Of a stretch of 64,000 bases of DNA, positions 2,676 to 63,900 are shown one piece after another. The stretch comes from Trichoplax adhaerens (lineage: Eukaryota > Animalia > Placozoa). Made by a program: the position numbers and the translations under genes. The first letter of the stretch is position 1. The number at the start of each line of letters is the position of its first letter. The stretch is taken from contig NW_002060948.1 of assembly GCF_000150275.1 (NCBI RefSeq), forward strand, positions 2,596,180 to 2,660,179, written 5' to 3'. The notes under the pieces were generated by a model. That model saw only the letters and a list, made by a program, of their open reading frames with translations, searched no databases and was not told the origin of the DNA.

Positions 2676-5600
2676 ATGGGTAAAAAGAATAGAAACAACT
2701 TGGGTAGGAGCATACAAAAGGATCGATTCGCCAAGAAGAACCAAATGATCGGTCCAGGAGACGAATGGGTGGGTAATAATCATTTTGGATGATGTTATTA
2801 ATTGCACTGGATGTATCGTTACGGTAACCAGCATTCCGAGATTTTGATCATCAGGCTAATGCTACCTATCCCCAATGGACATTAAATTAGCAGTATGTAG
2901 ATGTGACCCTGCTTGCATGCAGTTGTGAATTAGAGAATTAAATAGATGTAACATGAATCGATGATACAGCAGTCCTAAAATGATAAACTTAGTTAGATAG
3001 GCAGATACTGTCATTACCAATACGTACAGTATATGTTCATATACGCGTATATTCAGTACGTATATTTAATTCAATATGCTCAAGATTGCAATATCTACCC
3101 TTGATCCTGTCTTGAAAATGATGTAGATATAATAATATTCGTATACAGAAGGTCAATAGCTGAATATTTTTAGGCAGAGACTGTAATTAAGAATACGTAT
3201 ATATTAATAATTGAATATACGCGTATATACAGTACGTATATTTAATCCAATATGCTCAAGATTGCAATATTTACTCTTGATCTTGTCTTAAAAATGATTT
3301 AGATACAATAATATTCGTGTACAGTAGGTCAATAGCTAAATATTTTCCATCATATCATGCTTTTTTAGCTGCATTCTAGTCAAATCGACGATGATTCTGA
3401 TTGGGCAAGGCTAAATTTACATTCCGTAACGGAGCAAAGCTCTTTAGATGATTTCTTAGCCACGGCACAATTAGCCGGTACAGAATTTGCTGCAGGTAAG
3501 CTACCATGCAACACCGATAGCCTACAAGCTAGTAACTTCCATACGCGTACCAGTAAATTTAAATTTGCTTCAACCGTTCATTAATCATTGTCTATAGTAT
3601 TACCAATATAACATCTAATAATTCAATTTTTGAAATAATCTATAACGCCGGTCATTGATTCTACCCTTGATATCTGAAATGTCTATCTCAGGAGTGTAAT
3701 ACTAATCTAGTTTGGGTTATTTAATTGTGTAGAAAAATTAAATATTAAGGTCATAGACTCAGAATATGGCGAGACAACAGCTGGAGAAGATGAAAATCAA
3801 GCTAGAATTGCTGCCGAGGAAGAAAATAAAAAATTTCTGAGAATTCCTAGGAGGTCAAAACAAAATTCTTCATTACATTGAATTGATAGTACTGCGTCTG
3901 TATTGCAGACGATATATTGCCTACGAGTATACGATATACATATAGCAAGCGTGAGATTACGAAATAGTGAATGAAAATTATTTGCAATACAGTCTTGAAT
4001 TGCCTTCTTGACATACGTAGGCCCGCTTGGACCACTGATATGTCCGCGGACGAGTTACAATCAAAAGAACGAGATTACTTTTTAACGTGGCGGAAACAAT
4101 TATCTGAGTAAGTGAATATACAAAATCAACATGTAGCTATAGTATTGATTAATTGATATATTACACTACATTTACTTTTGCAGAGTGCAAGAAAATAATC
4201 AACTAATCATGACGCCATTTGAGAAAAATCTAGAATTGTGGAGACAACTATGGCGTGTCATCGAAAGAAGCCATATTATCGTACAAATTGTTGACGCAAG
4301 AAATCCTTTATTATTCCGTTGTGAAGATTTGGTATGTACGAGCGTATTACTACAATGTAGCATGCAGCATATACTGCAAATATATAATGTAAATGCAATA
4401 AGATGATACCGCTGTAATATATCATCAAGCAACTTGTATCTAACTATATTGTAACACTCATTAATCTATTACAGGAAGCATATGTTAAGGAAGTTGATAA
4501 TAGAAAAATTAATCTACTATTATTAAGCAAAGCTGATTTATTAACATCTGCACAACGGTAATTGACCTACTTGCTAGACGCCTAGGACTACCATGCACAA
4601 TTTCCATTTCTATTACTTAATTGTTGCCCTTATGCTTCATTATGACAACTGTAAATGATTCTTGATGTATAGATTATCTTGGGCAAAATATCTAAAAAGT
4701 ATTCAGGTCAACTTCGCTTTTTGGTCTGCTAACATGGAGCTAGAAGCCGATATCAAGGTTTACTACCTAGAATAGCGTATAGCGTGTATTCTTTTATTAA
4801 TCTATAGCGTTGCCAAATAAATACTATTTTAATTTTAATATCCTGTATAGAATGATGCCGATAGTACCAGTGATGATAATGAAGATGAAATTAATTCACG
4901 GGAAGAGGATAACTCTTCTTCGGCGAGTGATGAAGAAGCCGCAAATGAATCACGAAATCAAAATATTGCTTTAGAAAACGATATAAAGAATGAATCATGG
5001 ATCCCTTCAGAAGACGGTGAACCTAGTCAACATCAGGAATCTGAAGACATCAAAATACTAAATGGAGAAGAAATAATAACACTTTTTAAAACACTGCATG
5101 GCACTATAAATAACACAGAAGATGAAGATACTGAAGCTAAAGCAGTTACTATTGGATTAGTATGTTGAGTGTATTTCATTTATCGTCATAATACATCACC
5201 TGTTGATAAATCAAAAAAATTTGTTGACCTTGTTACGATAACACTATTAGGTTGGCTATCCTAATGTCGGTAAAAGCTCAACTATTAATGCATTATTTCA
5301 CAGCAAGAAAGTATCTGTATCTGCTACACCTGGTAAAACGAAACATTTTCAGGTACTTATTTGTTACCAATCATTTGTTATAGAGGAATACTAATCGTAT
5401 TTTGTAAAAATTCGTGTAAGCTTTTATCAAGTAGTTAAAAAAGTTGTTATATACTCTTTTAAAAATATTAGACGCTACATCTTGATAAGGATCTATGCTT
5501 ATGTGACTGTCCTGGGCTAGTTTTCCCATCCTTTGTCTCAACGAAGGCTGAAATGATAACTTGCGGTATACTTCCCATAGATCAAATGAGAGACTGGCTA

Positions 5601-8046: not shown

Positions 8047-11000
8047 CTATGTTTGTCTAAAGCGTTTGCTATGAATATACTTTTGAATGCGTTGCTTCAA
8101 TTCTGGAACTAAGAAATGATCGAAAAGTTAAAAATAGGATACAAATAATAGCTATATTACAGTTAAACCGTACCAGGCTTTAACATTTCTACAGTCAGTG
8201 ACTGTCGATTAAATGGATCCGTTGACGAGTTCAGTAAATGTCTATAAATTATGGAGCGGTCCATAATAACCCCACTAGGAAGTTCAACAGGTTCGGTCAT
8301 TATGGTATCCATTAATGGATCTAATAACAGAAAACTAGCTTTATAGGGTGATAACGAGTCTGCACAACACAAGCTATGACTTACTATAACTTATCGTGAA
8401 GACAAACATCAAAAGCTTCAACATTACGAATATTACCTTTAAATTCATCGGGAGCATCATCTAAATCAAGTTCCATGACGGCATAGCTAGCATGCTCTTC
8501 TGCAACCCTCTCCGCAAAGCATTCAAACAATTCTATCGAGGTCTGTTAATGTTATGCGTATAATAAGCAATCAATCTTACGCAGAGTAGACTGTTTAGCT
8601 TTCCTAAAAATTTTTACTCACAGGAGGTTTTATGTTATTTTTTCTTAAGCAGCGACTGACGTCGTTAAATAATTCCCTACTATAGGATCTCTGGAAACAT
8701 AAATGATAATAATTATTGTTTACATAACGACAGTTTATAATACGTCGCCTTTAGTAAATGAGAAAACCTTAGATTTTACCTGATCTGAAGCAACTGATTT
8801 TATAAAGATATCGTCATCCAAATGCAAATAGATATCAGTCAACTGATCTAGCAGGGCTTTCGGCTGAAAGTTATACTTTTCAGGACTACGCACCTGCATT
8901 AAAAAAAATAACTCTAACTATCTATATTCAACATCGAACTAAGCTGTAATCATTCCATCCATGATTAAAAATCCAATAATTCAAGTTATTAGCAACAGAA
9001 CTAAAATACAGTAACTATACCTTCAAGTGACGACACTTAGGTCCACAAAGTTGCCGTAAATTAAAATTTAACATAACGGCTAGTCTGTCACGAATTTCCT
9101 AAAAAGTTAATTATAAGTTAGCATAACATACTAGCATTAATAATTTTAAACTTTTAACTAGCTATTTATGTCATAAAATTTACCTCTCGTATGAAAACTG
9201 CTTTGACTTGACCTGTTAGGTAATGAAATAACGATACTGTTTCGTTAGCAAGCATTAGATATGAGCGGCATTGACGCTCATTCATCGCTAAATTTTGCTG
9301 TCGCTGTTGCTGACTCTCCTACATAGAAAAAATAGTTCTATCTAACGTTGTTTCTTATATTACAGAATGTAACAATGCTAATATGCCTACTGTACCGATG
9401 ATAGCTTTCCCCACGCAACTGTATCTTCCATTTGTTCTTGTGCATTGTGTATACTTTTCAACGTGTCCAAGGATTCATCAAGTAGAAAGGTAGTATCATT
9501 AATTAGCATATTAATAAATTGGATAAAATAGCCCTGAGATCTGTAATAGTAAAATACAATGCAACCAATATTTAAGATTATGTATATTCGCGATAAAGTA
9601 ACATTCAATAATATATAACACCGATAAACATACATCCTATCTGAAAAAGAAGATTCTTGGTGTTTTATGTCCGACCACAGACATTTCAGAATTACAGAAA
9701 TATGATATCTAATACTAAATTTATCATAGAATTCATTGGAACCACCGGTAGATTCCACATCTATATAAGTAAAATAAATCGGATTCATCAGGAATCAGAT
9801 TATTTGCATAAGAATAGTAAAAGAAATACCACTTAATATCTTACCTATATAAAATTTCATTAAAGCCGAAGGTAAATAGGTAGAAAAAGGATTACTCCTG
9901 ATCTCATCAAATATTCTGCGGGTAGAACCCTGAACAGCTGGACTAGCAGCAAATATCACCTAACAATCAGAGCTATAATTAGTTAAAACTATCACTAAAT
10001 TCTACAAAGAAATGCTCATTTAATATTTTTAATCGAAGCGAACGCAATACCTCTACAAGCTTTGCGACCAAATAAGGATTAATAATATAATGAGAAGTAC
10101 AAATAAAAACCACTAGTAATTCAGCAATATCCGGAAGGCTAGGATCGGACGAAATCCCACATGGGCAGTGTCTAAGTAAAAGAAATAAATTAGAGACGCG
10201 AACGTTATTTGATTTTGTAACTTATCAAAAATAATGAAATGGTACAGAAAGATGACATAAAGTAGAATACATACTGCAAATAGAACAATAGAAAATCAAC
10301 AGTATCTTCAATAAAATATTCAGGTAATGCTCCAAAAACAATCGGGCAATTATTCGGTAAAGGAAGAATCACCCTATAGTAAAACAATAAATTTCGGTAA
10401 GCTAGATAGAATCGTTTTAAAAGGCTGCGTTAAAAATTACATACCCCTTTGTTTTATCAACTGCTACTAAGGACGTAAGCCATCGCGCAACCATACCACA
10501 CAGCTGCATACTCTTGCTTAACACGCTGTCATCATTCAAGGCTATAGTGCTACAAACCTTCATTTGCTTCAAGTGCTATTATACATTACAATGCTTCCGT
10601 TATTAAAATAAAATCAAAGCATGACAGTAATTATTATGGTAAATGTAGCATTAGTTATCTTTCAACCTTGATTTGATCCTTCCATTTTTTTATAGCCGCT
10701 TTATTCCTCGCGGCTATAGGTAAATTCTTCCATGTACTTTCTTGTGTCTGTAATTCATCAAGCATACGGCTCATATCACGAAGAATTCTCCCTCTGCGCA
10801 GGCACTTTCTACAGCATGGTAGCAATGAAATATGAAAAGCATGTATCGCCATGAAGAAACATTCTGTATTAAAGTTAGGTTCCCTCCTTAATGATTCTTC
10901 AGCTGTAACAAGAACGTAAATAAAAACGAAAATTATATTTTTTACAAATAGCTTTAACACAGGGTGGTAATCTTGAATTGTCAAGATATAATCATGTAGC

Positions 11001-26636: not shown

Positions 26637-27736
26637 TCATCTTACTTTTATAGACAGACCATGAATAAAGGGTATACCAACGCCAACTTTGCTCATATAA
26701 TCTAAATATTCTTGACCAAAAAATTGCAAAAGATAAGCTTCTTCATCTTGAATCCTTCCATTGAAGAAATTCCATGAGGCAAAAGCGTACCCAATACAGC
26801 AAATTGGGTTGCATAGGATAACCTATAAATGAATAATTCGGACTCTAATCAATCATAACATACAGTATACTGTACGTATGTGTCATATTTTGAAGTAATG
26901 GATATTACGTCAGTGATAGATAATACAGTAATATTAACAATTTCTGAAAGATAGGTTTTAAAAGAAAATGTTACAAATTACGGCATCAAACAATATCATG
27001 CGCAATAAGAAGATTCATGTAACGTTTTAGCCACTCATTAATAATAAGTCTACCTCACCTGAGTTCCTACACTCCACCAAAACCAACCAAAATAGGATGG
27101 GTGTCGGCATAACGAATAGACATCATGAGTTACTAGCTCGTGGGAAGATGCTTTCTTGGTAGCTACAACGTGACTGAAGTTTGATGCTGCAACAAACATA
27201 CTACGCTTACGTATAAATTCGCCGCAAACAGCCATGATAATTCCAATGCAACTTAGCCAATGTAATGACTTGAGTTGAGGGAAAAAATAAAGCTCGATAA
27301 AGTATTCAATCCAGCTAGAAACTGCTGCAATTCCATATTCCTTGCTATGATTCAGTAAAAAAGAATCCATACTTAATTTTTCAGCATTAAATAATGCTGT
27401 TGTAGCATATTCTGACCAATGGAAAAAGGATAATGACATTAAATAAAAGCCAAGATAACGTAAGTTCGTTCCATATACGACCAGGTACAAGCCAAAGCTG
27501 AAAACTAATCCTAAAAATGTAGCTGCTACCAATATCAATCCACCAGAACGAACACGATAAATAAGATTCGAGATCTTTAAAATACCAAGAGCAGCTATCA
27601 ACACAATGCCAATCAGAGTTGGTAGAGTACTAGCTATCACTATGTAAGGAAGTGGCAAGCCTAGCCCAATTAGAAAGCCCCATGTCGCAATACGTAATTC
27701 CCCCACAACCTCATATTGGCCATTTTTATTTGCCAT
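26637..27736 (-). CDS. ICMT: Protein-S-isoprenylcysteine O-methyltransferase, 2 exons (27736-27059, 26822-26637)
   Basis: Motifs FFHWSEY, DSFLLNHSKEY, NFSHVV, HELVTHDVYSLCRHPSYFGWFWWSVGTQ|VILCNPIC, RIQDEEAYLLQFFGQEYLDY and GIPFI. Confidence 0.96.
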
Positions 27737-33450: not shown

Positions 33451-36400
33451 ATGAGTTTCTCATTTGAAGATGTATCATATTCTTTACAAGGCAAGCCAAT
33501 CTTAAAGGACATCTCAGCTAATGTTAAAGTTGGTGAATTAGTTGCTCTGATGGGTCCCAGTGGTAAGTCGATAAGTTAATGCAACTGTAACGTTACGATG
33601 TGCTCGTACATAATCATTTGTAATTGATGTACTGTATTATGTCGCTAGTAAACGATACAGTACTGTGGAAAGATCCTGTAAATGGATGTGTAAAGTACAC
33701 GTCTTGCTTTAACATGGGAAAATATATGCGTTAATTGTTCAGTAGATGAGTAGAATATGAATGCTTATAGAACTTAGATATACTTGATAATTTTATAGTA
33801 AGATATGTAGGTATCTCATTTAAGTTATTTGTTTCATTAATTAGGGGCTGGTAAAACCACACTTTTGAAATTGCTCTCACATCGTGTCAAAGCGGATAAC
33901 GGCCGAATTGAAATTAATGATAGACGTTTAACTAGAAGACTTGCCCGACGAATTAGCTATGTTTTGCAGGAGGACGTCTTTTTTCAGAATAGTACCCTGA
34001 AAGAAACCTTAGAAGTACATAAGATATTGAGATTGCGCGTTATCATCTTAGAATATGTCTAAAAATTAGCGTTGACCGCTTTTGACTACTGTATGCATTT
34101 TAATTAATTACATCTTGCAGTAAACGAATTTACGCTTGCTTTGTATACTTAATTTATACCTTAACGCTATTGACATTTGTTTCATATGATGTTGATAAAA
34201 ATATCTTAGTTGTAGGCATATTATTAACCAAATAATTTCTGCGTTCATTACAGTTTTCGGCTAGGCTTAGACTCCCAGATACCATGAGCGTTGACGAAAA
34301 GTTACAGAAAGTAAAACATGTAGCGAAGACATTAAATCTAGACAAATGCTTAAATACAAGTTCGTATCTTCATTTACGATACATTTACCTGTAATCGCCT
34401 TGAGGATTGTAAAGCAACCGAGCAATTTTTTTTTAATTCTTTCATTTAAATTTTCATATTATACTTATCATTACAATCAACCATTCTGCTCTGTCTAGTC
34501 ATTGGAGGACCATTTCTTCATGGACTTTCTGGGGGTAACTGGGTAGATTAAGTTATAATAGCATATTGATTTACTGTTCATTTAGCAACTAAAAGCATAT
34601 TAATTGGCCTAGGCGAGAAGAAAAGAGCAAGCATAGCTTGTGAATTATTGACTGATCCTATACTTCTGTTACTGGACGTAAGTACATATACGTAAATAGG
34701 CTTTTCTGTCTTACCACTTGGTGAAGTTACGCTTTATTTGGTAATCATAATTTGCCGAATTGCACAGCTAGCTGGTACAATTACTGAATACTTTTACGTT
34801 TTATTAGGAACCAACATCTGGTTTAGACTCTACCAACGCTTTAAATTTAATGAACGTACTCAGAAATATAGTTTCTACAGAAAATCGAATGGCAATAGTT
34901 TCCATTCATCAGCCATCGAGTAAAATGTTTTACATGTTTGATAAATTAATCCTTCTTGGAGGTGGCAAACTCGCCTATTTTGGTCGCCCATCAGACGTTC
35001 TGGATTTTTTTAGCAGATGTGGTTTGCGTTGTATTGGTCATTATAATCCAGCCGATTATATCCGTAAGTACAGTGTGGAGTTTTACGTCAGAGTATTACT
35101 ATCAATTATTGTTTTGTTCAACTTGCCCACTGTATATTACTTAAATTTTTTCTCGTATGATTTAATCATTATGTATATTGGCTACCTAATGGTTAGTTGA
35201 AAAAGCTTGCGAAGGCGGAGACGGCTTTGACAATGTTGTGCAATGTTATAGTAAATATAGGAAGAGGTAATGTTATAAGGTAGTAAAGGTACTCGTTCAC
35301 TTCTGCTTACCTCTGTGAACAATTTACCACAACAAGTGTACATCTCTATGTTGTACGGATTTAGTACTTTTGGCTTACACGTCATAAACTGGCTAGTTTT
35401 AGTAATTGATTTTAATGTTCCCTAACAATAAAATATATATTGTTCTTATTGCTTGCACTTAGTACTGTAGGCGAGGTGCACCATAGCGAGAAAGTTGAAC
35501 ATACACAGATGTGGCAAAGGGTAAAAAAAGAAACTGTCCTGTCAAATAAACTCATAGATGGCCAACAAGAAAGCATTGAAGTAGTTATACGCGATCACGT
35601 AAACACGAAAAACCCCACTGTTGTGGATCGTGAAAATTACAACAACGTAAATATATATGTGTTATCCGTTGCTAAATGCAATATTGTAAACGTTTCCAAT
35701 TGATTGCCAAGTACTAAATTGGACGCTAACGAATTTAATATTAGCTAAGTGACGAGCGGTTCATAAGCGTTAAACAATATCTTAATTAAATTTTCTTCTC
35801 TGTGCCGCTAATACTTTCTGAGTGTAGATGTCGTTTACCGTATATTTCCACTACGTTAGGGATTTAATGGGATATCGAGTTCGAAGACAAATGGTACTAA
35901 TTCCGACAATAAATCCCATGACACTGAGATTGCCAACGGCATGACGGAGGCCGATGTTGAAGTGTGTATAGATGAAAGAATGAAGCGTTCATGGCCAACG
36001 TCATTCTTAACTCAATACACAACTATCTCTAGGAGAGCATTTATCCAAATTGTTAGGTTTATTCTTACAAAGCTAAAGGCTGTACAGGTATTACATTAAG
36101 CCATTTAATTACATCTTGCTTATTATTGCTAATATGATTGCGGACAAGTTGATAAAATATACCCATGACGATACTACAGATGCTTTTAATGGTGACTGTT
36201 GTTAGTGCAGTCTGGTTTCAAATACCTCGCAGAGAAGAATTCATGCAGTCTATATTTGGATATGTAAGTATGAGATGTTGCTCCTGCATAAAATCCTTAT
36301 GATACTATACTACGGGGGCTCAAAGTAATGAAACAAAACGTTTAATAACATAAAGTAATGTTTTGTCCTGAACTAGTACTTTTTCATCGTTACATTTTGG

Positions 36401-37372
36401 TCGTTCACTCCAATGTTTGACGCTTGTGTATCTTGTAAGTCTGTTATTATTTTTTAATATAAATATTATCTAAAATTTTATGCAAATTCATGCTTATTGA
36501 ATTTGAACATCCTACTTAATCATGAACTATATCAACTGTAGTTCCGTTGGAGAGAATTGTATTCGTAAAGGAAAGATCAGCTGGGATGTTTAGGATTTCG
36601 TCATATTTCGCTGCTAAAGTGACGAGTGAAATTCCAATTTACTTTATATGGCCCACGCTATTTTTTACGGTATCCTATTGGTGCTCCGGTGTTGGCGGAT
36701 TTACAACCTATATCATAACACTGATGATCCTCCTTGTTAACGTAATAACAGTGCAGGTAAAACTATTGGTGATATTTGCGAAAGTTTTACATACCATGTG
36801 CATTGTCCACTTACTCGTATTATTTGCTTGTATTCTGCAGGCAATAGGAATGTTCATAGGAGTTACTGTAAAAGACTTTCATAGATCTGTTGTAGTTGCT
36901 AGCGTTATGATGTTATCGTTCATGTTATTGGGTGGATTTTATAATCAGAGGATCCCAGTTTGGCTAACATGGTTTCGATACGTGTCTCCTGTCACGTACA
37001 GTTACTCTGCTATGTTGACTGTTAACTTTCATAATGAACCTCCTTTACGGTTAGTAGAAATATTAGTCTTTCTTAGCGGTAGATCATTATTTATAGCCCT
37101 TGTTACTGGTTTAGCGGATTAAATCATTGATGTTAAATTCCTTTAGGTGTGGTGTAGAATCATCGGTATTTCGTATCTGCCAAGGATTAAACACTACGGA
37201 ACTTTTATCTACTAACGGTACACAGAATCAGTTAATTACCGCAGACATGGCTTTAAATCAATTGCAAATTCTTCTCCCTGTTGGAGAAAATCTCGCAGTA
37301 CTCTTTGGTTTAGGATTATTCTTTAGAATTTTAGTTTACTATTCACTACGATATATGAATACACCGCAGTAA
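33451..37372 (+). CDS. ABC transporter subfamily G half-transporter (NBD-TMD, White/ABCG-like), multi-exon
   Basis: Walker A LMGPSG|AGKTT, Q-loop SYVLQED, signature LSGGEKKR, Walker B LLLLDEPTSGLD, H-loop SIHQPSS, YNPADY, then TMD motifs ERIVFVKERSAGMFRISSYF and LLGGFY...IPVWLTWFRYVS. The start codon is tentative. Confidence 0.93.
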
Positions 37373-38541: not shown

Positions 38542-41500
38542 TTACAATAATGTTTGTTTTTCTCTGTCGTTTAGTAATCCCGGTATTTTTCCGTTCGCCC
38601 AATCCGACTTTAATTTTTTAACTTTGGCAAGTATTTTTAACGCAGGACCGAGCTTTAAATTTAAGATAGAAATTAAATGTTCTTCGCGTAAAAGCAGTAA
38701 TGCTTCTCCATCAACTTGCTCATTAAGGAATAACTGTCCATATCTCTCACAACCATCAATAGTACATACAAAATACGCAACTTGCTGACTATTCCAAGAG
38801 TAAGGACTAGAACTAAGCCAAGTGGTATCTAACTGATCTGTATTGATGGATTCGTTTGATATCGAGCTGTGCATAACATTGACTGGAAATTTTCTGGCAC
38901 GAGTATCTTCATCATTTACCGCATCAAATATGGTCATATCGGATCTCTATAGATGCAGATTCATTAAAAAATACTATTCAATAAAGTAGGCTACTTCGAT
39001 ATCTACAGTAAATAAGGTAAAAATCTCAGTTTCAAATTACACCACATTGTAAAATAAAACGATTATTCTAGTGTATTACAATTGAAAACATGCACGCAAA
39101 CGATTATAAATTACACTGACGATATATTACCTTTGTACAAAGTTCGCGTGAAGTCTTCAATAATTTACCATTACTAGTATTACGGCGATATTTGTAAGAC
39201 ATTTGATTCACTGTCGAAGCTTTCGAGTGAATAGGATACTTCTTTGAAACATTCTTTACATTTTCTGTATTCGCTGTTAAATCATTACCTTCTGCAAAAA
39301 TTGTACAAGTAAACAGATGCATTGTTATTATTATCACTACCATGATATAATAGAAATCACACAAATGAATTTATGCTACATGTTTACTTCCATACTCTTC
39401 TTAGCTATATACTGCACATATTAAGTATTATTTAACTGTAGGATTTATTTGCAGGAATCATGTCCCAATGGTGATTGTTCGAGTGACAATTTTAACTACT
39501 GTATGATTACCTTATTATCCTTTACTAATGAAATCTACGTTTGCACTACCAGAGGAGTTTAATAGTTCCCGACACTATGATGTGAACTTCAAGCATAATT
39601 CAATTTTATATCCATTGCAATGTAAATTATCTAGCCGTACTGGATCTTATAGGTAATACAATGTACATGTTGTCCGTACAAATTACTTATTTATAATTTT
39701 AAAGTGCCACAGACCAGGCTAAAATAAGGCTAAATTGCTTAAGATATCAGAACTAGTAACTGCAAAAATCATTGCTGTAATATTAACTGTAGTAGGTTAA
39801 CATCATCATGTTAGTGCAGTATACAGTATATAACATATACAGTATTCCATGCGCACTGTAAGCGGTAAAAGTGACAGATAAGGGAGTACGTAGCACTATA
39901 AGATGGAAAGTTATAAAGTTTGAGATATGTATTGTGGCCAAATGTTACTTCATACGCACCCGTTGAATATGTCGTCGTTGAAGGCTTCTACAAAAAGACA
40001 GAATAGAACAACACCGAATAAATAACATAAAATATGCTACGTTATAGAATACATGTACATCAATAGGGCTTACAATTAACAGTCACCGTTATATCAACTA
40101 TTTGATACTTGAATAAATACATTTTTAAAAATGTCCAAAATAAAAGGTATTCTGCATACGTACTTCTATAGATATGTGCCATGGTATGACAGATAAGCTG
40201 AGTGATAAGGTGAGCATGATGACGTATGCAGTAACGGCTTTTACTGACAATTAAAGTAAACTCATAACTGTAGTTTGCGAAGAATAAATCAGTATCGCAA
40301 GGTTAGGCGTATCAAGGCCAAATTAGCTAGAATATATCTATGCACTATTAGATTATGGAATGACAAGGTCACTGCTGTCGTATCAGGTTATACATTCCAT
40401 CACTAATTAAAAATAATACGCATGCAATGTAGTAAGTAAGTGTTGCTTTCCTTTCAATTATTAATACTATATGTGCAATCGAATGATAAGCATGTGTCTT
40501 CTCGAGTCTTCCTTCGAGCCCTCATCCCGTTTTTACTGTCCGATTCTGACCTAAGGTTATGCTACTCGTATATAAATCAATTTTACGTTAGTGACATCAT
40601 AAATGCTCAGCATCAGCTATGAGATTTTTTTCATGAATTATTGTACACTGATAGCACATCAGAATTTGTTCATGGTTGTTATAGCATTATGAGTCAAGAC
40701 TAAAAGGTGATGTAATTTCAGTTTTCAAAGAGGAAGACTCGTAAATTTGTAAGCTCCTGAGTGTATTTCAAATATTGTATTGCGTATTTCTTTACCATCG
40801 ATCGCACCAACTGTACATACAGTACACGCATAGCTACAAAGTAAGCAATACGTGGTCAACATTTTTCAGTAAGCAGAAATATTATTACTGATTAAAATTG
40901 AGAATCGTTCAGGTAGCTTTTTAGAAATTCAAAATTCCTTGATCATTATGTACCGAATATACCCGTACAGTACTCGCATACTATGGATGTACGTATTGTC
41001 GTCATAATACACGAATTGAGCATCAGTATCCTGCTATGTAAGGTTAAGCTGAAATAAAGTATAATTATAATGAAGCAATCCAGTACGAGGGTCGATTATC
41101 TCTTATACATAGAGCCATCAGTTCCTAGCTTGTGTTGTTGCAAAATAACTTATTCGGTCAAGTAGAAAACAACCAGTATACGTCCTTATAATACTGTTTG
41201 ATCATCATAATATTAGTAGTGTACACTGATGTACTCGAAAAGTAAGTTATGAGATGAAGATTGTTTCGCCTAAGCTGCATAGAAATATTGAATCTTATAA
41301 TTCATTCCTGACTGTAGTAATCGACTGACGTAGACAGCTGGATATATTTTGGTCAATCGATAGAAATTTGGAGTTCATGATCAAAATACAATGGCTGCCT
41401 ACGACAGTCGAGCGTAAAAAGATTTCAACGAAATTACAATCCTTCATCAAGTTAAGAGTACACCGAGTCAAGATTTCCCTTAACTGCATGCTAGATCACA

Positions 41501-53583: not shown

Positions 53584-56500
53584 ATGTTTTCAATCCATTT
53601 AATCGTTGGAATATGCCAATTTATTTTAGGCATTGCCAATGTTGCCTTACTTATTACTGACTGGATTCATCTCTATTATCATGTGGGCAATTCACTCTTG
53701 CTAGGCAATGGCGTTACTGCAGTATCTGTAAGTTAATATATGGCCCAATGATCGATTTGATGCTGTTTTTAATGTTAGACTGTTCTTCACCGAGTAGCAC
53801 TGGATTGTTAATTTCTATTTTCACTTCAACACTTACCCTCCACAATTAAAATATAAAGACTCTAGATGAAATATCATTCCTCAAATTTTTTGCATAATCC
53901 ACTCCTTTACATGCTGCCCTATAGGTCAACGAAAGGTTGCAAAACCTGGCAAAGAATGATTTATATAGAGCTTTATATTTTGATCACTAAGAATTAATTA
54001 TGTCAGCTGAAAAGTAAAAATCGACCGTGGTCTACTACTGTAGACGGCCGGTACAGCCGGTCGAAAAGAAGCCCTGATAGTAGTTGAAGACTTATCATTT
54101 CATCTACAAATCATAAAATCTTATGGCTTTGTCTACCGATCTTGATTCTATTGCCTCTAGAATTAATGACAATGACGGGCAAGATATACTTTTAGGCTAT
54201 TTTGATTCGCCATTCTATAACGTTTTAGCATCCTGTGTAAAGGAGGACGCTTTACCACTCAAAATGGCAAGCAGTTGGACGTAATTGATTGCAGTTAAAG
54301 CGCAGTTACATTGATCTAACATTGTCTGTGTCAATTCTTCCCATCGATCATGACCATACATTGCTGCATATACTCCGTAACTGCCCAATGTCGAGTATTC
54401 TCGAAACATAATTTTTAAAGGATGATAGTTTACTCTATTCACATCAATAAGGAAGATAAATAGATTTAAAGTAGACCCAATGACAGTATACGGAAGTACA
54501 CGACTCATATGCGAACTCGTAAAATACAAGATATTGCAAGCGTACTGTCATCATCGAGACTCATCTTGATATTAAAAAGTTCTTATCGTAGTCTATTCAT
54601 CACCAATTAAGATTAACAGCAGTGGCGAATGTTTTAACGTTTTTATCCTATTCTAATTTTCCAGCATACAAAACGTATTTCAGTGCTATATTTGATGAAA
54701 ATGGACTACTGTAGATTAAAATTCCTCTTGCTGTACAATCCACATATTATATACAACTACCTCGCAATTATAGCCTATTCGTATGCATCTGCACCGATTG
54801 TAGCTAGAAAATGTTGCAGTTTATTAATCTACGTGATATCTCAATTAGTAATAATACTGTAGAACGGTCGATTAGATTACCTTCATACCCTATCGTTTAT
54901 CTTCCACCTTCCATGATATAGATGAATAGGTTAAAAACATACAACAATTTGTATCGCTGTCGTAGACATATGAATATTGACTGAAGATGGAAATGGAAAA
55001 GTCAATGTCACCGTCGATTAGTCGAGTGGATACCGCAACTTACATCGCTATGTCGATATTGTAGATAGAAAGTAGCACACTCATGCCGTAACTGAATCTT
55101 TCAGTAATTTTCTAACTTACAGTACTACCGCAAGTGAAATGATCGGATACGTTAGAAAGCGGATAGCATGAATTATCTTTGAATCGCAGATATCGACGAG
55201 ATCGATTATAGCTAGGAAGTAAAAATATCGCTGATCGACATAATATCTCAACTAGCATCAGTGCAGTCATAAACAGACACACGCGTATATCTTATTTTAT
55301 CATTTTTAGTATTCTACAAAATGATATTCTACACATTCTTCCTCTACTGATAGACTAGACAGATAGATAGATTTGACCCAAAATTCCAGCTTAATTGATT
55401 CGTAATTGTAAAAGACCCATTTACAGGCAGAAATGAAAAAGCACATATCGTAGTCTGTTGATCTAGATGATATCACTTTCACAACGAGCATCAAGAATGC
55501 CTTATGCTGTATTCTACTCTACTCTTCTAATCGTATTCTACAGTATTTTTATCACTGTAAATAAAGCAGACGAATTCGTTAAAAGAACAAACAGTGTTAG
55601 TCTTATCGTAATCATGGACATTGACTATTTCATAGAGAGAAAACTAAAAATGGTAAAACCCATGTCATAATCTGTTGATCTCGATCATATTATCACTAGT
55701 ATCAGAAGGATGGTAAATTGACTTTTTGTTTAATCTTCAGATAATGTTACATTACTAATTATAATAATAATGGATAGGATAAATCAAACTTGTATAACTA
55801 ATATACGTAGTGTAAAATTGTTACTGTTTCATTGATGGATGGTATCATGTTAGTGCTCAATAGAATGTATTAAATGAAGGATCAAAGCTAATATCCATTA
55901 GCGTGGCTTAAACTGAAAATTAAGTTGATATTAATATTCTCCTTTCTTTCTTTATTTATTTTCAGTTATTCTCTTCTTCCATCATCGCATTATGTTATTA
56001 CCGCACTAGCAACACCAAAATGGTAAGTAGATATCTAAATCTTAGATGGAGTAATTAATTAATTAACTTACCTGTTTAGTTTATTACTAAAAATTCGTAA
56101 TATGCAGCTCCCAAATGCGTAATAAATTATCTTGTGTAGCCAATTTGTTTGAATTATGTCTTTCCAGTCATGGCTACCATTACATATTCGGTTTAAAAAC
56201 AATAATTGCATTAAAACATTGTTCTATGCCATTTTATACCTCTAGTCTCGTCATCTATTGATATTTTGGTGTAATTGTTTTCGTTATTTATGTTAGTGAA
56301 TTTCACTTAATCACCATCCATGTTGAATCCTATCTCACCGTTAAATGTTAACAAGCTGTGTACTAAATCATGGTCAAACCTGACCAAATACTTTCTGCAT
56401 CGGCAGTGTTTCCGATAGCGATGCTAACTCCGAGCAAAACTTCCCTCGTAATTTTGGTCATGATTTACTTATTTAACTAAGAAATTTCTACAACAGTTTG

Positions 56501-59500
56501 CTCAGTATCTAAATTAAGACTGCTGCTGCACTTATACCGCATATCCTTCGAGTGTTTGTCGCTAGATAAAGGCTCAAAGCAACAATTGTAATTAAAATCA
56601 TTTCAGACCAGTAGCATTCATCGTTTAAACATTATCAGCATGAAATTCTCAAGTCGACAGCATGAAATATTTGAACAAAGGAAATTGCCAATCTTTCTTT
56701 AATGATCAAAATCCTGTTCTAATGTTGAGTATTATGCATACCAATACTAACTATAAATTTGATGAAGTAATATTAATGATGCATATACTCTGGATAAATA
56801 TCTAAAGTAAAATTAAGCCATTTTCGTCTTGTTAAACCTGTTGCCTTCAACATTAACATTAATTGCGATCTATGTGTATTATAACTGAGTAGTCTTTAAA
56901 TTGAAAAAAGAAATACCATCCTATCAGTCTTCGATACGAAGACGAGCATAACTATATCTTAATGAGTGGATATTGTCTAGGATACATCATATTGGATCGA
57001 ATGTACTATATTGATACAGATAATTATCTAATATTTACTATTTATATATCAGCATATTAATTTTATCTACAATATTACACTATTTAGCTACTAGGCGTGT
57101 TCACATTTTCCATGATGACTATTTGGTGCGCTCTTGTAGCTTTATTCCAGGTCTGCTACAGCTATATTCGAGTTAGCTACTTCTTTTTTGGAACTTCACG
57201 GGCTACAATCATCGCCTTTGCTTTTACTGTCCTTTTCCAAGTAATAAATATTTTCTCCAGTATTTTCATCGTGTTGAAGTATAAAAAATTCTTATACCAT
57301 CATAATGACGAACAAAGGCGTGAATCAATCGTAACTCACCCATTGGCTAGTAAGGCAAACAGTATCAGCTGTTTACTAGGAGGAACTTGCTCATTGCTTA
57401 TTGGAGTATTTACAATCATATTTTTTTATGGAATTTATGGTTCACCAAACTGCTACCTCGGCATTTGTGTAAGAAATATGATTAAATTTATTACGAAATG
57501 TTATTAATTTGATACTATCTACAGATATTAGAATTTTATATTAGACAGCAATTTGTATGCTCACAATTTATTCATGCTTTATCTATAACTTAAAAGACAC
57601 TTACGGTTGGAGCGCTAGGAATGTTTGCTCAAAGATGCCATAATCTACCTGCTCTGGTGAGTTTTTATTCAGCTACTTTATAGAAGTAGTAGTATTATTT
57701 GCTACTTTCATACCTGCATTACAGTATGTAATATTAGCTATCAGGATCAATTTAAGGTACGGTACTGGTATATGGAGTGTCATTGAATTTAGTTTTAATC
57801 ACTTTTTTATACTTTCTTAAATACAGGATCTTATTATCATGTTTATTTGTCGTTTTGGCATCTTAATAGCAATAACCAATATGGGTTTTGCTACGTACTA
57901 CTTTCACTTCATCTTCACTTTCCATGGATTGGAATATCTCATTGTCGGCAACCTTGTCGCTTATCTTTTCACGATGGCTTTCTCAATCTTTAATTTAATT
58001 TGTACAACCCTAATGTGTTACTCAGCGAGCTCAGAGAACAGAACAGTCGGCCTATTAACGATAACATTGCGCTCACCAGCAGTAAGCACTATAGCAAAAG
58101 TTGGCTATTTCAGCGGAATAGGACAATTCATTTGCTCAGCAAGTATCTTCGCTTGTACAATTGCCGCTTGCGTTATTTGGCGTGGTGATACATTCGCCAG
58201 TTTAGCTTTGATAGCGGCAATTTTGGTAAGCTACTAATACAATAAGTTTCTGTTAGTGTTAATGATATTAACGATAAATTCAACCATTAGATACTGTAGT
58301 ATGCTAATAATACTAATAATACCTACTTGCTATGGATTTGCATATATCGTATCTAATCAGATGTAATCGTTTAGTATATTCGGTAGAAGTTTATTAATAT
58401 CGTTTATCTTACTGTATTCCATGAATCGCCATTTGCCAGTAATAGCCTATGCATTATGATAATATATAATAATATGCATGTGTAAAAGATATGGCTAACT
58501 ATATAATTATTATCCATACAATATCAGAAAATCTTGAATCGTTTTTAATATAGAAAATGCTACTAGCATTATGTTAAATTTTAAAATCAACTTTCTTTGA
58601 AAGTCATCTCCTATGTATAATCTTTCGTGATGTTCATATATTTGTACTAAATAGTTTATCGTAACGGTTAATTTATGCACTGTATAGAAATTTTCACTAG
58701 ATACATATAATTATGGCCGCCTTGTTAGTAGCTTTAAATGCACGGTTAATCGTTGTAACACGTTACTATAATATTTACTACGAAAATGACAATCATTCAC
58801 TCCATAGAATACAGTAAAAGTGTCGTTTTCATTGCAGCTAATATTACAGGTCAAATCTAATTTACGACGAAAACGACAATCATTCACTCCATAAAAATAT
58901 AGTGAAAATGTTATTTTCATTACAGCTGATATCACAGGCCAAATCCTGTAAATCATAGCTTTTTGGCGCACTAGCGCAAACATACATAGAAAATGATTGT
59001 ATTGATATAATCTAAAGAGTCTTCGTTCTAAGAGATATTTATCGTCAATGGAGATGGCTGTCTGTTTCAAGGCTTATTTAAGCAGTTTTAGCGAATATCT
59101 ATTCTTACTAAACCGCCTAATTTTCTTATTACTATCAGGTTTTACTTTCTGCACAACTTGGAAATCATCTAGCTCTGGATCAATCGGAGGACTTTGTAAG
59201 ACGAATTTTTAATATTCATACTGCAACAGATGAGCTCGGATTAACACTGTAGTAATTATATAGGAAATCCTGTGTATAGTAATATGTTTTCACTTTATCT
59301 TGCAGATATTCATCTATTTTATGTCGAATATAAGTGGAAGCGTTTGCTGCGTAAACGCATTTGGATTAGCAATTTATGAAATTGTCGCTTTACAATTATC
59401 CCACTACAATCACAACGTCTTCATATTATTTATATTCATCATCTTGATACTAGCAGTAGCTATTGCTCTACATTTGAACAGCTTTGTGATAACGGGACGC

Positions 59501-59718
59501 GAGTTGAAAATATTCAGCGGCCGTGTATCTAATGTAAGTCCATTATTCTATTAGACTGATTAGTACTAATGCTTCAACTATAAAATATCTAATTTTGTCA
59601 TCTCTGAATTATATATTAATAGTACCGTGGACAACTACTTAACAACAATGACAACGATAACGATTCCAATGAAAGTTCAGAATCTGGTTTGGCTCCTAAT
59701 ACGGCAGTTAACGCATGA
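53584..59718 (+). CDS. Uncharacterised ~473-aa, ~12-TM protein made of three CD20/MS4A-like tetraspan modules
   Basis: Eight exons separated by phase-0 GT-AG introns: 53584-53727, 55966-56022, 57088-57468, 57597-57656, 57827-58225, 59139-59195, 59306-59533 and 59623-59718. The spliced ORF is open and shows a three-fold repeated hydrophobic pattern. The start codon is tentative and the family call is by eye. Confidence 0.75.
58774..58946. repeat. 87-bp tandem duplication in an intron of the 12-TM gene
   Basis: TTTAC.ACGAAAA.GACAATCATTCACTCCATA...TTTTCATT.CAGCT.ATAT.ACAGG.CAAATC occurs at 58774 and 58861. Confidence 0.9.
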
Positions 59719-60962
59719 GGAAACAGTTTTCTTCATGGAATTGTCATCAAGTAATTGATTTGAAACAAATGAAACCCTTGTAATACAGTACATAAACATT
59801 TATCGTAGTCCAGTCTGTAATATTGCATACGAGTATACCAGTACAGCATTATTTTACCTTGTACCTTCTAAGTGTTTTACACGTTATTATTATAGTACTC
59901 GAGTCATAGCTCTTCAATATAGGAAGTTTCCATTATTTTATCGACTTTAGATCAATTTATAGTTTTAACCCTTTCCCATAGAACTCCGTGTTAACTTTAT
60001 ACACTTTCGTAGAACTATGTTATAATTAAAGTATCATTTTAGTTTATGTAATTCTGCGTAACTTAAATTACTGTAATATTACGTGTACGTCAACTTAGTA
60101 AGCCAGTTACTTCTAAAGAACCTAGTTATTTGATAACATTACCTCTTCTAATTAATACAAATTTTACTAGACAACCTGGCACGTAAAAATACCTGTACAC
60201 GTATCACAAAAGTACAGTGCAATAATTGTACCCATCTAATTAGATAAGTATTGTATCGTAATTTACTTATTTGTTATATATCATACAATAAATTATTTAC
60301 CTTGTTAAGAAGTTTTTACCACTTGGCTGTGTTTCTTTTGTTCTGGCATTATGTGTATCACTAGGTCATCTTTCAGTCAATTATATTCTTAACTATATAC
60401 GCCTTATTGTACAATTAAGGAAGATAAAGCTTGCTAATCTAGATGTATTCTTACACTACGTATCAATGAGAGCATGAAGATGAAAGCTATATATAGCATA
60501 AACGCGCGATTAGTATACAAGTATATAAAAGCAACTCAGCTTTCTAATCACTATTCCTATCGCTAGTGTATGTACTGTACGTACTACTTTCGGAAATAAC
60601 TTCGATAATAAAATAGATCGACTATAAAAGTGCAAACGAGAAATTACCACCAACTCTAATATTTATCATCAAATTTATTTAGTTTAATTTGATGCCCAAT
60701 ACAAAATTATTTAGAAATACTTTTCCAGCTCGTATTAGCTCTGCTGTAAAGACAGCTGTAATAATAATATTAATTCATACTACTGGTACTGTCTGTATAC
60801 TAGAGAATCAACGTAAGCATAATATTTATTGTGATCATGCAAATGAGTTTACATCGTAAATAAAAGGCCAACATAATACACAAAATTTCTAAGAGTACAT
60901 ATTTTTTAAACTACAGCCAAAAATCGAATATCAGATTTTTGCAGATAAAAATATCTTTCCGC

Positions 60963-63900
60963 CTATTTACTTGTACCAAATAGCTCCTCATCGTCAAATT
61001 CATCCAAGTTAACATCCTATAAAAAACAATCATCCAAACACGTCAGCTATCGCATTAGATGTACGCATTAGATGTACGCATTAGATTTGTATAGTACTTT
61101 ACTATCTACTTACTGCTCCATCAATGTCATCGTCAATATCATTCAAGTCAATGTTGAAATCCTAATATATCAATATTATTAATTAATCATAGCATATTTA
61201 TGATTTACTGCAGAAACGTAACAATGTAATTGTATTAATAACCTCGGCATTATCCAACTCTTTATCTTCACCAGATTCTTCCATAGCGACTGATGGTTCA
61301 ATCCCATCTTCATCTGTATCGGTAGTGCCATTTCTACATGCATCTATTACTTCAGCAAGATTTACTTCTAGATTGCTCTGAAATAGGTAAAGATTTATAG
61401 CATTAATTCTTTCAGGTACAATAAATATTGTTTACTATTCAAATAAATGTAATATAACAGATCGATTACCTTGACTTTTGGATACTCCGATGCTGGAGAT
61501 AGTAAGCCGAGTTGCGGTTTTAAGATGCTTTCAATCTCAATACCTTGTGATAAGTCTGGAAATAAATTTTCATATTTCTCTGGGTCAGCGAGAGAATTCG
61601 CTGCTTTTTCATTCATTTTTCCTAAATCTTCTTGCCATAATTTTACAACTCTGTAAAATTGAAGGAGTACGGTAGAGTATTTATTAGTTTAAGTAGTAGC
61701 ACTAGAAATAACTTAATTACCATTACCGTGATACTTGGCTAGGTAGGTAAGCACGAGCGAAGAATGCAGCTTCCGGTAATCGGCCAGTAGAACATAATAA
61801 TTCCAGGCAAGCGTCCAACCTTTAGACATAACAATAACACATAAATTGCAGTAGATAGCAAGTAATAACAATACGGTATCAGAAGTATTTCTATTTCGTA
61901 GTGGAACAAATCGTGAAGAATGATACTCTTTTCATACCTGCCGAGCAGGAAACAAGAGACAAATGCTATATTTGTCTTATCATTCTTTTTAGACGTGCTA
62001 GCCAATCTTGATATCATATCAGCGTTTCCAGATGATGTAGCTAACAATAACAATCCGCCAAAATCACCGGACTCTTCAAGGCATTTCTCAGCCAAATCAA
62101 AAGCACCATTTTTCATACATTGTTCTGCTAAGCGTTTAAATTTCTGAGGTGACTAAAAGGCAAGTTAAAATCATAGTTTTATTAACGTATGATAGAGTCG
62201 TAAGAATATATAAGGTTATATTGGCAATACCTCAGCGTCTTTAGCAAACTGAAACGCTAAATTCCAGTTATCAGTACTAATGGCAAGGTCAAATCGGTGA
62301 TCAGGATCCGTAGATACTTGTAATGCTGTCTTTAAAAAGCCTTGTTTTTCAAGAAAGCGCGCAACTCTTGTCTTCTGATCCTCAGGTATAGTTGGTAATA
62401 CCCTATCCGCAGTGTCAAAATCTTTTCGCATAATCGCTGTCTGATATTCCATAACGGATAACGGCAACGAGTAACTAACAATATTTAAATCTTTATCACC
62501 AAGGTATAACCGATTATCTTTCGGTATATAGCCAAGTAGATACATAACCCTTTAAAAATACAGTTGACATAGATTAAACTTTTTTGAAGAAAAGCATACC
62601 TAATAGAAACCAGATTAACTCACCCATCCAAATGAGCAACAGTAACTATTTCTCCTCCAACGAAGTAATTTAATCTATTAACTGTAAAAGAAATTGTATT
62701 CACTTCTAACAACTGGTTATTAAACAATAAAGTACATTAAAAATAAATCAGATTTCTTTACTAACCTGAATTTGTGAAAATAAAGCTGTCGCCTACCCAT
62801 ATACCGGTTTTTACCACTTCTTGTACCTCAGTTAGAACCTAAACGAATAACCACAATTACTAAGATAATAATGAATATTGATTAAAGATGTCAATTGCCA
62901 TACGTCGAAGGCAGCTTCGATGCCATCTTCAGTGACGCTTTCATCATTCTCGGGTGTCTGAACTACAATTTCTTGATTGTATTTTAAAACAAAGAATGAC
63001 TCCTCGGTAGCAATACAACATAATTCACCACTATCTGACCAGGAGATCTAATTTAAAACAATTTACACACATTAAAATTTAACAAGTAACACATCCTAAA
63101 AGTAATGATACAACTATCGTCCACAACGAATATTTACTCTACATAGTTACAGATAATGTATGTTATACAGTACCGTTTTCGGTACAATTTCTATTCTTCG
63201 AACTAATCTAAGTGAATCCCACTCAAAAAATGTCAAGCTCGTTGACGACTTTACTCCTAGTAAGTAACCTCCGTAAATGCCTACAATAAAATAAGTACAT
63301 AAGTTAGGGAATTCAAATCTTTAAGCGCAAACGTAAAAGAAACTCTTCCTTTAACCTTCAGCTCCATAATCTGGCTTGAACGTTTGCTTTTCTTTAAAAT
63401 TCTTAAAAATTTTAACCTTTGACGTGCCTTCGCGAATAGCATATCTACATATACATATGCAACAAGGTTAGAAACTACTTTTGCTTTTACTATTCTGATA
63501 GTAGAGTATTTTGAATCATACTGAGATGAATCGGCAGCCCAGACAAATTCATTTGCACTTCCGTAACTTTTACTTCTTAAAGCCATAGCAGTGTATATAA
63601 TATATTCTCCATCGCCGCATATAACTACAAATCTATAAACGATACTCATAGTAAGTAATGCTATAATTAATACAGTATTAAAAAGTCAATAGGTCGAACC
63701 TGCCATTAGGGTTATGCGCGATCGTTTGTGGATACAATTCACAGCTGCCCATGTCCTTAACAGAAATAGGTAATCTCTCACCATCCTTTACGTTGATATC
63801 TGTCAAAGGAGTGCAACTTGGTCAAATAAAAAAAGTCATTTTAAACACATTAAAGCTGTAATGGGAGATGATTACCGCCAAGATTCTTAACATTTGCTTG

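Follow-up and report, generated by a model that had tools for sequence, protein, structure and literature searches.

We describe a gene of the placozoan Trichoplax adhaerens that appears to encode a single protein with twelve transmembrane (TM) helices, and we favor, as the probable explanation of its structure, the internal triplication of a CD20-like unit. The gene lies in a 64,000-nt stretch of the genome (G000:C1409:2596180-2660179), which we refer to as the window and which belongs to a 105.63-Mb assembly of 1414 contigs with ~33% G+C. We hold with high confidence that this is a real and conserved eight-exon placozoan gene, and the triplicated four-helix architecture of its predicted product is very likely to be correct. 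A CD20-like ancestry of the three modules is likely on the basis of sequence comparison: CD20-like genes of the same genome share the exon unit and show intron-anchored similarity to the modules, and it is for this reason that triplication of such a unit is the reading we prefer.

Structure of the gene and its predicted protein

The exon borders were read from the sequence and then checked by script, which bore out the eight phase-0 exons and the open reading frame (ORF) of ~473 amino acids that a first-pass annotation of this DNA had proposed. The exons lie on the plus strand between 53584 and 59718 and sum to exactly 473 amino acids; the length of each is divisible by three, all introns are phase 0, and every intron runs from GT to AG, with pyrimidine-rich acceptors and donors that are mostly GTAAG. 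Exon 1 (53584..53727, 48 amino acids) starts with the first in-frame ATG and carries TM1 of module 1 (IVGICQFILGIANVALLI), an outer loop and the first half of TM2, and it ends three residues past a small residue, immediately before the donor gtaagt. Exon 2 (55966..56022; 57 nt, phase 0-0) supplies the second half of TM2 and the start of the inner loop (LFSSSIIALCYYRTSNTKM). Exon 3 (57088..57468, 127 amino acids) holds TM3 and TM4 of module 1, a linker rich in lysine and arginine (K/R), and TM1 with half of TM2 of module 2, which is continued in exon 4 (57597..57656; 60 nt, phase 0-0; TLTVGALGMFAQRCHNLPAL). The same arrangement recurs in exon 5 (57827..58225, 133 amino acids), with TM3 and TM4 of module 2, a linker, TM1 of module 3 (FSGIGQFICSASIFACTI) and half of its TM2, and in exon 6 (59139..59195; 57 nt, phase 0-0), with the second half of that helix (VLLSAQLGNHLALDQSEDF). 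Exon 7 (59306..59533, 76 amino acids) encodes TM3 and TM4 of module 3 and the start of the C-terminal tail, and exon 8 (59623..59718, 31 amino acids and a TGA stop) the remainder of this tail, which is polar and acidic and ends in ..AVNA. The interleaving of long exons with short ones of 57, 60 and 57 nt (exons 2, 4 and 6), as well as the peptides quoted for them in the first-pass annotation, is thus present in the sequence, and so is the feature on which its claim of one fused protein rather than three genes was based: both junctions between modules lie inside exons 3 and 5, which are open and have the same lengths in an orthologue described below. Intron 5, the longest of the downstream introns, contains a 37-nt direct repeat (58773-58809 and 58860-58896, 92% identical, spaced 87 nt), overlain by a 119-amino-acid ORF on the minus strand (58711-59070). 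Tandem Repeats Finder (TRF) detected no tandem arrays at the locus.

Hydropathy analysis yields the twelve helices anticipated for this protein, as hydrophobic spans arranged in three groups of four. The two linkers between modules, in exons 3 and 5, contain 5 and ~3 K/R residues and the C-terminal tail contains 3, against 0-1 in the TM1-TM2 loops, and from this distribution we infer that both termini and both linkers are cytoplasmic; hydropathy and K/R content together thus predict four helices per unit with cytoplasmic ends. An AlphaFold2 model of exon 3 alone places helices where they are expected (residues 2-32, 38-72, 85-113 and 118-126) at a predicted local distance difference test (pLDDT) score of 71. 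A Foldseek search of the PDB with this exon-3 model returned generic matches to G-protein-coupled receptors (GPCRs) and Orai, the best with an E-value of 1.0. In the linker that joins modules 1 and 2 (window 57310-57330, exon 3) the sequence HHNDEQRRESI is conserved: the orthologue has HHNDQQNRDSI and the paralogue Ta2 has ..GEQRREQ... By eye, the RRES of this linker fits a site for a basophilic kinase and is a candidate for one.

Twelve predicted helices in a protein of this size are typical of solute transporters, and the product could in principle be an ordinary 12-TM transporter, of the major facilitator superfamily (MFS) or similar, with an exon pattern that mimics a repeat. We consider this highly improbable. 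The helices follow a 4+4+4 pattern interrupted by two long linkers rather than a 6+6 pattern, no exon piece matches a transporter family in Pfam at E<=10, single-exon searches of the protein library, a word index and metagenomes found no relatives beyond placozoan-like DNA, and four paralogous genes all carry the exon unit in triplicate.

Orthologue and evidence of selection

Pfam, homology and comparison searches of the window gene were made exon by exon. A full-library phmmer search with exon 3, covering 1.84 billion representatives, returned a single true relative, P0001, which is 51% identical. Two other proteins, P0002 (1029 amino acids) and P0003 (535 amino acids), matched exon 3 in multiple stretches and were rejected as spurious, being translated tandem satellite repeats with a unit of ~65 residues. 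P0001 is encoded on L006, a 4-kb ENA metagenome contig on which tblastn places exons 3 to 7 in colinear order (E 2e-46, 6e-9, 6e-59, 2e-10 and 2e-29, respectively). All five have canonical splice sites and lengths identical to those in the window (381, 60, 399, 57 and 228 nt): exon 3 at L006:517-897 (52% amino acid identity), exon 4 at L006:1012-1071 (74%), exon 5 at L006:1168-1566 (64%), exon 6 at L006:1658-1714 and exon 7 at L006:1831-2058 (63%). The counterpart of exon 8 (L006:2238-2348) ends in ..TVNA and a stop. The same five introns measure 91-179 nt on the contig and 89-913 nt in the window and cannot be aligned. Downstream of the gene, ~60582-61344 of the window is colinear and conserved with L006 3267-4019 (tblastx E down to 5e-29), and the locus is therefore syntenic.

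The ratio of non-synonymous to synonymous substitution rates (dN/dS) between the window and L006 is 0.15-0.21 per exon (0.15 for exon 4), indicative of purifying selection. Exon 6 is the extreme case, with 19/19 identical residues at 84% nucleotide identity (dN 0; proportion of synonymous differences, pS, 0.64). That five exons recur in order and with unchanged lengths on an independent contig, under purifying selection, is more than chance would produce. These findings bear on the possibility that the model is mis-joined, that it spans three separate genes, or that it is a decaying pseudogene. The model is predicted from sequence, its first two introns are long (2238 and 1065 nt), and L006, which reaches no further than 516 nt upstream of exon 3, lacks counterparts of exons 1 and 2. 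Against this, exons 3 and 5, which hold the junctions, are open; their lengths are unchanged in the orthologue, their counterparts in the three paralogues are open as well, and the dN/dS values, the conserved C-terminus and the canonical splice sites argue for an intact gene. We therefore regard a mis-joined or decaying gene as very unlikely.

Paralogues in the Trichoplax genome

The first-pass annotation had also pointed to a search of the genome for paralogues, and three were found with the same plan of eight exons, all phase 0, with both junctions in open exons. Ta2 (C1403:179713-182554, that is, 3714-6555 of L005, G000:C1403:176000-185999) has short exons of 57, 57 and 51 nt and was found by tblastn at 1.8e-9; Ta3 (C1411:4143720-4147139, or 3720-7139 of L014, G000:C1411:4140001-4150000), with short exons of 57, 57 and 57 nt, by a profile at E 2.7e-9; and Ta4, on the minus strand (C1403:108965-111970, or 2965-5970 of L035, G000:C1403:106001-115000), also with three 57-nt short exons, by a profile at E 0.007. 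Each has a first exon equivalent to exon 1 of the window gene and a 57-nt counterpart of exon 2. Triplication of the exon unit is thus a family character and not an accident of one locus. Ta4 shows the least divergence between modules: the TM1 glutamine is present in 3/3 of them, and its modules 1 and 3 have clearly similar short exons (z 8). Searches with the Ta4 exons brought no further paralogues. Some 60 kb past the downstream end of the window, in G000:C1409:2720001-2750000 (L038-L040), we observed two 63-nt phase-0 exons (MIISSSLGIATY.. and MIVAGAFGIATY.., at 4582-4644 and 10233-10295 of the joined stretch) that resemble the short exons of the family.

Comparison with CD20-like genes of the Trichoplax genome

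When the Trichoplax genome was scanned with the Pfam CD20 model PF04103 (curated cut-off 27.9 bits), the locus of the window gene was not picked, and the scan led instead to L007, L008 and L009, three TM1 exons at other loci. Taken as single exons, these match positions 1-40 of the model (E 2e-4 to 2e-3). Searched against the whole PDB, a profile built from these three exons matches human CD20 alone, and the alignment stops at ..WGGIM, which is the end of the exon. The exon plan could be resolved in two of the three genes; that of L008 (C1408:3.62 Mb) was traced as far as its TM1 exon. In the L007 gene (L007 1453-2335), exon A ends in ..PIWSGIF followed by gtaagt, a 57-nt phase-0 exon follows (YLMAGIFAIVSRKTRNIHL), and one further exon, exon C, carries TM3, a loop and TM4. 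The L009/L016 gene (L009 1441-1626; G000:C1409:5096439-5096495 and from 5096621) has the same plan, with the 57-nt exon YFIAGILSACSRKTKDIHL. The two genes are adjacent, at 5.090 and 5.095 Mb of G000:C1409. A three-part plan, in which TM1 and half of TM2 are followed by a phase-0 exon of ~57 nt and then by TM3 and TM4, is thus common to L007, L009/L016 and every module of the window gene family, and the window gene shares its intron positions with both of these same-genome comparators.

The sequences of corresponding parts are also similar. Exon 3 of Ta2 and exon C of L007 are identical at 14/28 positions in an ungapped match that starts at residue 1 of both (BLASTP E 9e-5), exon 1 of the window gene matches the TM1 exon of L007 (exon A; BLASTP E 0.001), and hhalign sets columns 3-30 of A5, a profile of the four genes, on columns 3-30 of A6 (E 7e-4). 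Among matched pairs of pieces (TM1 with TM1, or TM3-4 with TM3-4), 14-21% reach a z-score of at least 3, compared with 0-2% of mismatched or reversed controls (Mann-Whitney p 0.004 against mismatched and 0.0014 against reversed controls). We also carried out ungapped comparisons anchored on the introns, with shuffling within segments of 8-10 residues. For the ten residues that open each short exon, z was 10.8 between modules and 6.1 against the 57-nt exons of the CD20-like genes; for the last eight residues before the intron it was 8.7 and 5.3, respectively. The third residue before the intron is G or A in 12/12 modules, and in the three CD20-like exons it is G. A TM1 motif of the LGxxQIxxG type can be read in module 1 (VGICQFILGI) and module 3 (SGIGQFICSA) and is degenerate in module 2; hhalign of all TM1 pieces gave a probability of 11%.

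Several observations weigh against a CD20-like origin or leave parts of the model less well anchored. The first-pass annotation had proposed a comparison of each module with the Pfam CD20 family; the exon pieces of all four genes lack a PF04103 match even at E<=10. A profile of 11 TM1 pieces searched against the PDB did not find CD20 and matched only delta-toxin (E 1.4). Exon C of the comparator genes has no PF04103 match of its own. Among the modules of the window gene itself, neither gapped pairwise comparison by Smith-Waterman nor hhalign reached significance. Exons 1 and 2 draw their support from the paralogues and from splice signals, and Ta4 is tied to the family by a weak profile match and by its architecture. 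Finally, the sequences that entered the similarity tests are related to one another and were compared with shuffles, and packing motifs of small residues can arise by convergence in short TM segments; we therefore read these tests as good and not as conclusive evidence. The triplicated exon unit of the first-pass annotation is supported by the threefold exon plan and the anchored scores between modules, and its assignment of the units to MS4A/CD20 is probably right, given the exon plan and anchored similarity shared with same-genome CD20-like genes.

These considerations lend some weight to a different account, namely that the genes form a placozoan-only 12-TM family with a triplicated four-helix unit and no CD20/MS4A ancestry, the exon plan and motifs having arisen by convergence or chance. 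The missing Pfam and PDB sequence matches to CD20 fit this account, as does the fact that the sole true relative in the full library is an orthologue, and Zuccolo et al. (2010, PMC2826416) cautioned that unrelated membrane proteins can show short TM similarities to MS4A. A word-index protein search with exon 5, limited by its length, gave no match, a JGI metagenome scan with an exon-5 profile found no relatives, and none beyond placozoan-like DNA came from the library, word-index or metagenome searches. Convergence or chance would, however, have to account for the recurrence of the three-part plan, with its phase-0 exon of 57 nt, in two CD20-like genes of this genome, for an ungapped match of 50% identity from residue 1 of homologous exons, and for matched pieces that outscore mismatched and reversed controls in addition to positive anchored tests. 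We consider a placozoan-only family without CD20/MS4A ancestry rather unlikely.

Other features of the window

By eye, four ORF fragments elsewhere in the window resemble an isoprenylcysteine carboxyl methyltransferase (27050-27736, minus strand), an ABCG-type transporter (34850-37122, plus strand), a SAM-domain (polyhomeotic-like) protein (38542-38937, minus strand) and coatomer beta-prime (61739-63649, minus strand). A search of Rfam found no RNA genes in the window.

Model and comparison with known systems

We envision a scenario in which a CD20-like tetraspan unit of the MS4A/sarcospan type was triplicated within the gene to give the three modules. Each module would retain the ancestral plan of TM1 with half of TM2, a phase-0 exon of ~57 nt with the rest of TM2, and TM3 with TM4, and the junctions between modules would have been turned into continuous exons. 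The three bundles may pack side by side, such that one chain would determine which units come together in an assembly that CD20/MS4A proteins with a single module form by oligomerization. The protein could serve as a membrane scaffold or as a ligand-sensing or ion-handling unit, although the activity itself is a guess. A role in sensing or ion handling is plausible by analogy, and rodent necklace olfactory neurons indeed employ MS4A proteins as non-GPCR chemoreceptors (PMC7776563); any one specific function is, at best, unlikely to be the right one, and we treat the labels of chemoreceptor, channel and heterotrimer as inference only. A bolder idea is that these genes are a placozoan family of single-chain, pseudo-trimeric CD20-like proteins that reveal a three-bundle assembly as the ancestral working unit of CD20/MS4A and that serve an animal lacking neurons as non-GPCR chemosensors or as units that conduct ions. 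We regard this as a long shot.

The origin of MS4A genes has been put in jawed vertebrates, with invertebrates said to lack them and look-alikes dismissed (PMC2826416), and our literature search found no paper linking CD20-like genes to placozoans. The literature neither confirmed nor refuted a 57-nt exon in vertebrate MS4A genes. If these genes share the intron positions too, the CD20-like unit would date back to an animal lineage that is among the earliest-branching. The retention of a fixed fusion of three units in four paralogues is a natural experiment on tetraspan assembly, and it offers a starting point for studying the structure of MS4A oligomers and for identifying placozoan sensory proteins that are not GPCRs.

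The likeness to CD20/MS4A proteins (PF04103) resides in four helices per unit with ends that are predicted to be cytoplasmic, and perhaps also in a TM1 that resembles the G..Q[FIL]..G type in several modules and in the small residues of TM2. The window protein differs in having three units per chain, which are too diverged for the Pfam model, and in lacking a long second outer loop and, by eye, a tail motif of the immunoreceptor tyrosine-based activation motif (ITAM) type. In human CD20, skipping of exon 6 removes one TM helix and outer antigenic sites (PMC3628892), whereas in the window gene TM3 and TM4 are encoded by one exon. With respect to MFS-like transporters, the window protein has no 6+6 pseudo-symmetry, and its exon pieces have no match to a family hidden Markov model.

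The closest published parallel tempers the novelty of our findings, since tandem MS4A proteins have already been reported. Oligomerization is a recurrent theme in the MS4A family, and predicted polypeptides of chicken, opossum and platypus contain 2-6 MS4A units head to tail, which the authors read as support for it (PMC2826416). As in those polypeptides, the units of the window protein are fused head to tail in one chain. The vertebrate units, however, are recognizable and recently duplicated, whereas those described here are very diverged, always three in number, and found in a four-member placozoan family with a fixed exon plan. The single-module genes L007 and L009/L016 share with this family the three-part exon plan, including the phase-0 intron three residues past a conserved small residue of TM2 and the exon of ~57 nt that follows it, as well as in-register similarity in TM1, both halves of TM2 and TM3. 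They differ from it in having one module per gene and in TM1 exons that reach PF04103 at E ~2e-4, which those of the window gene do not.

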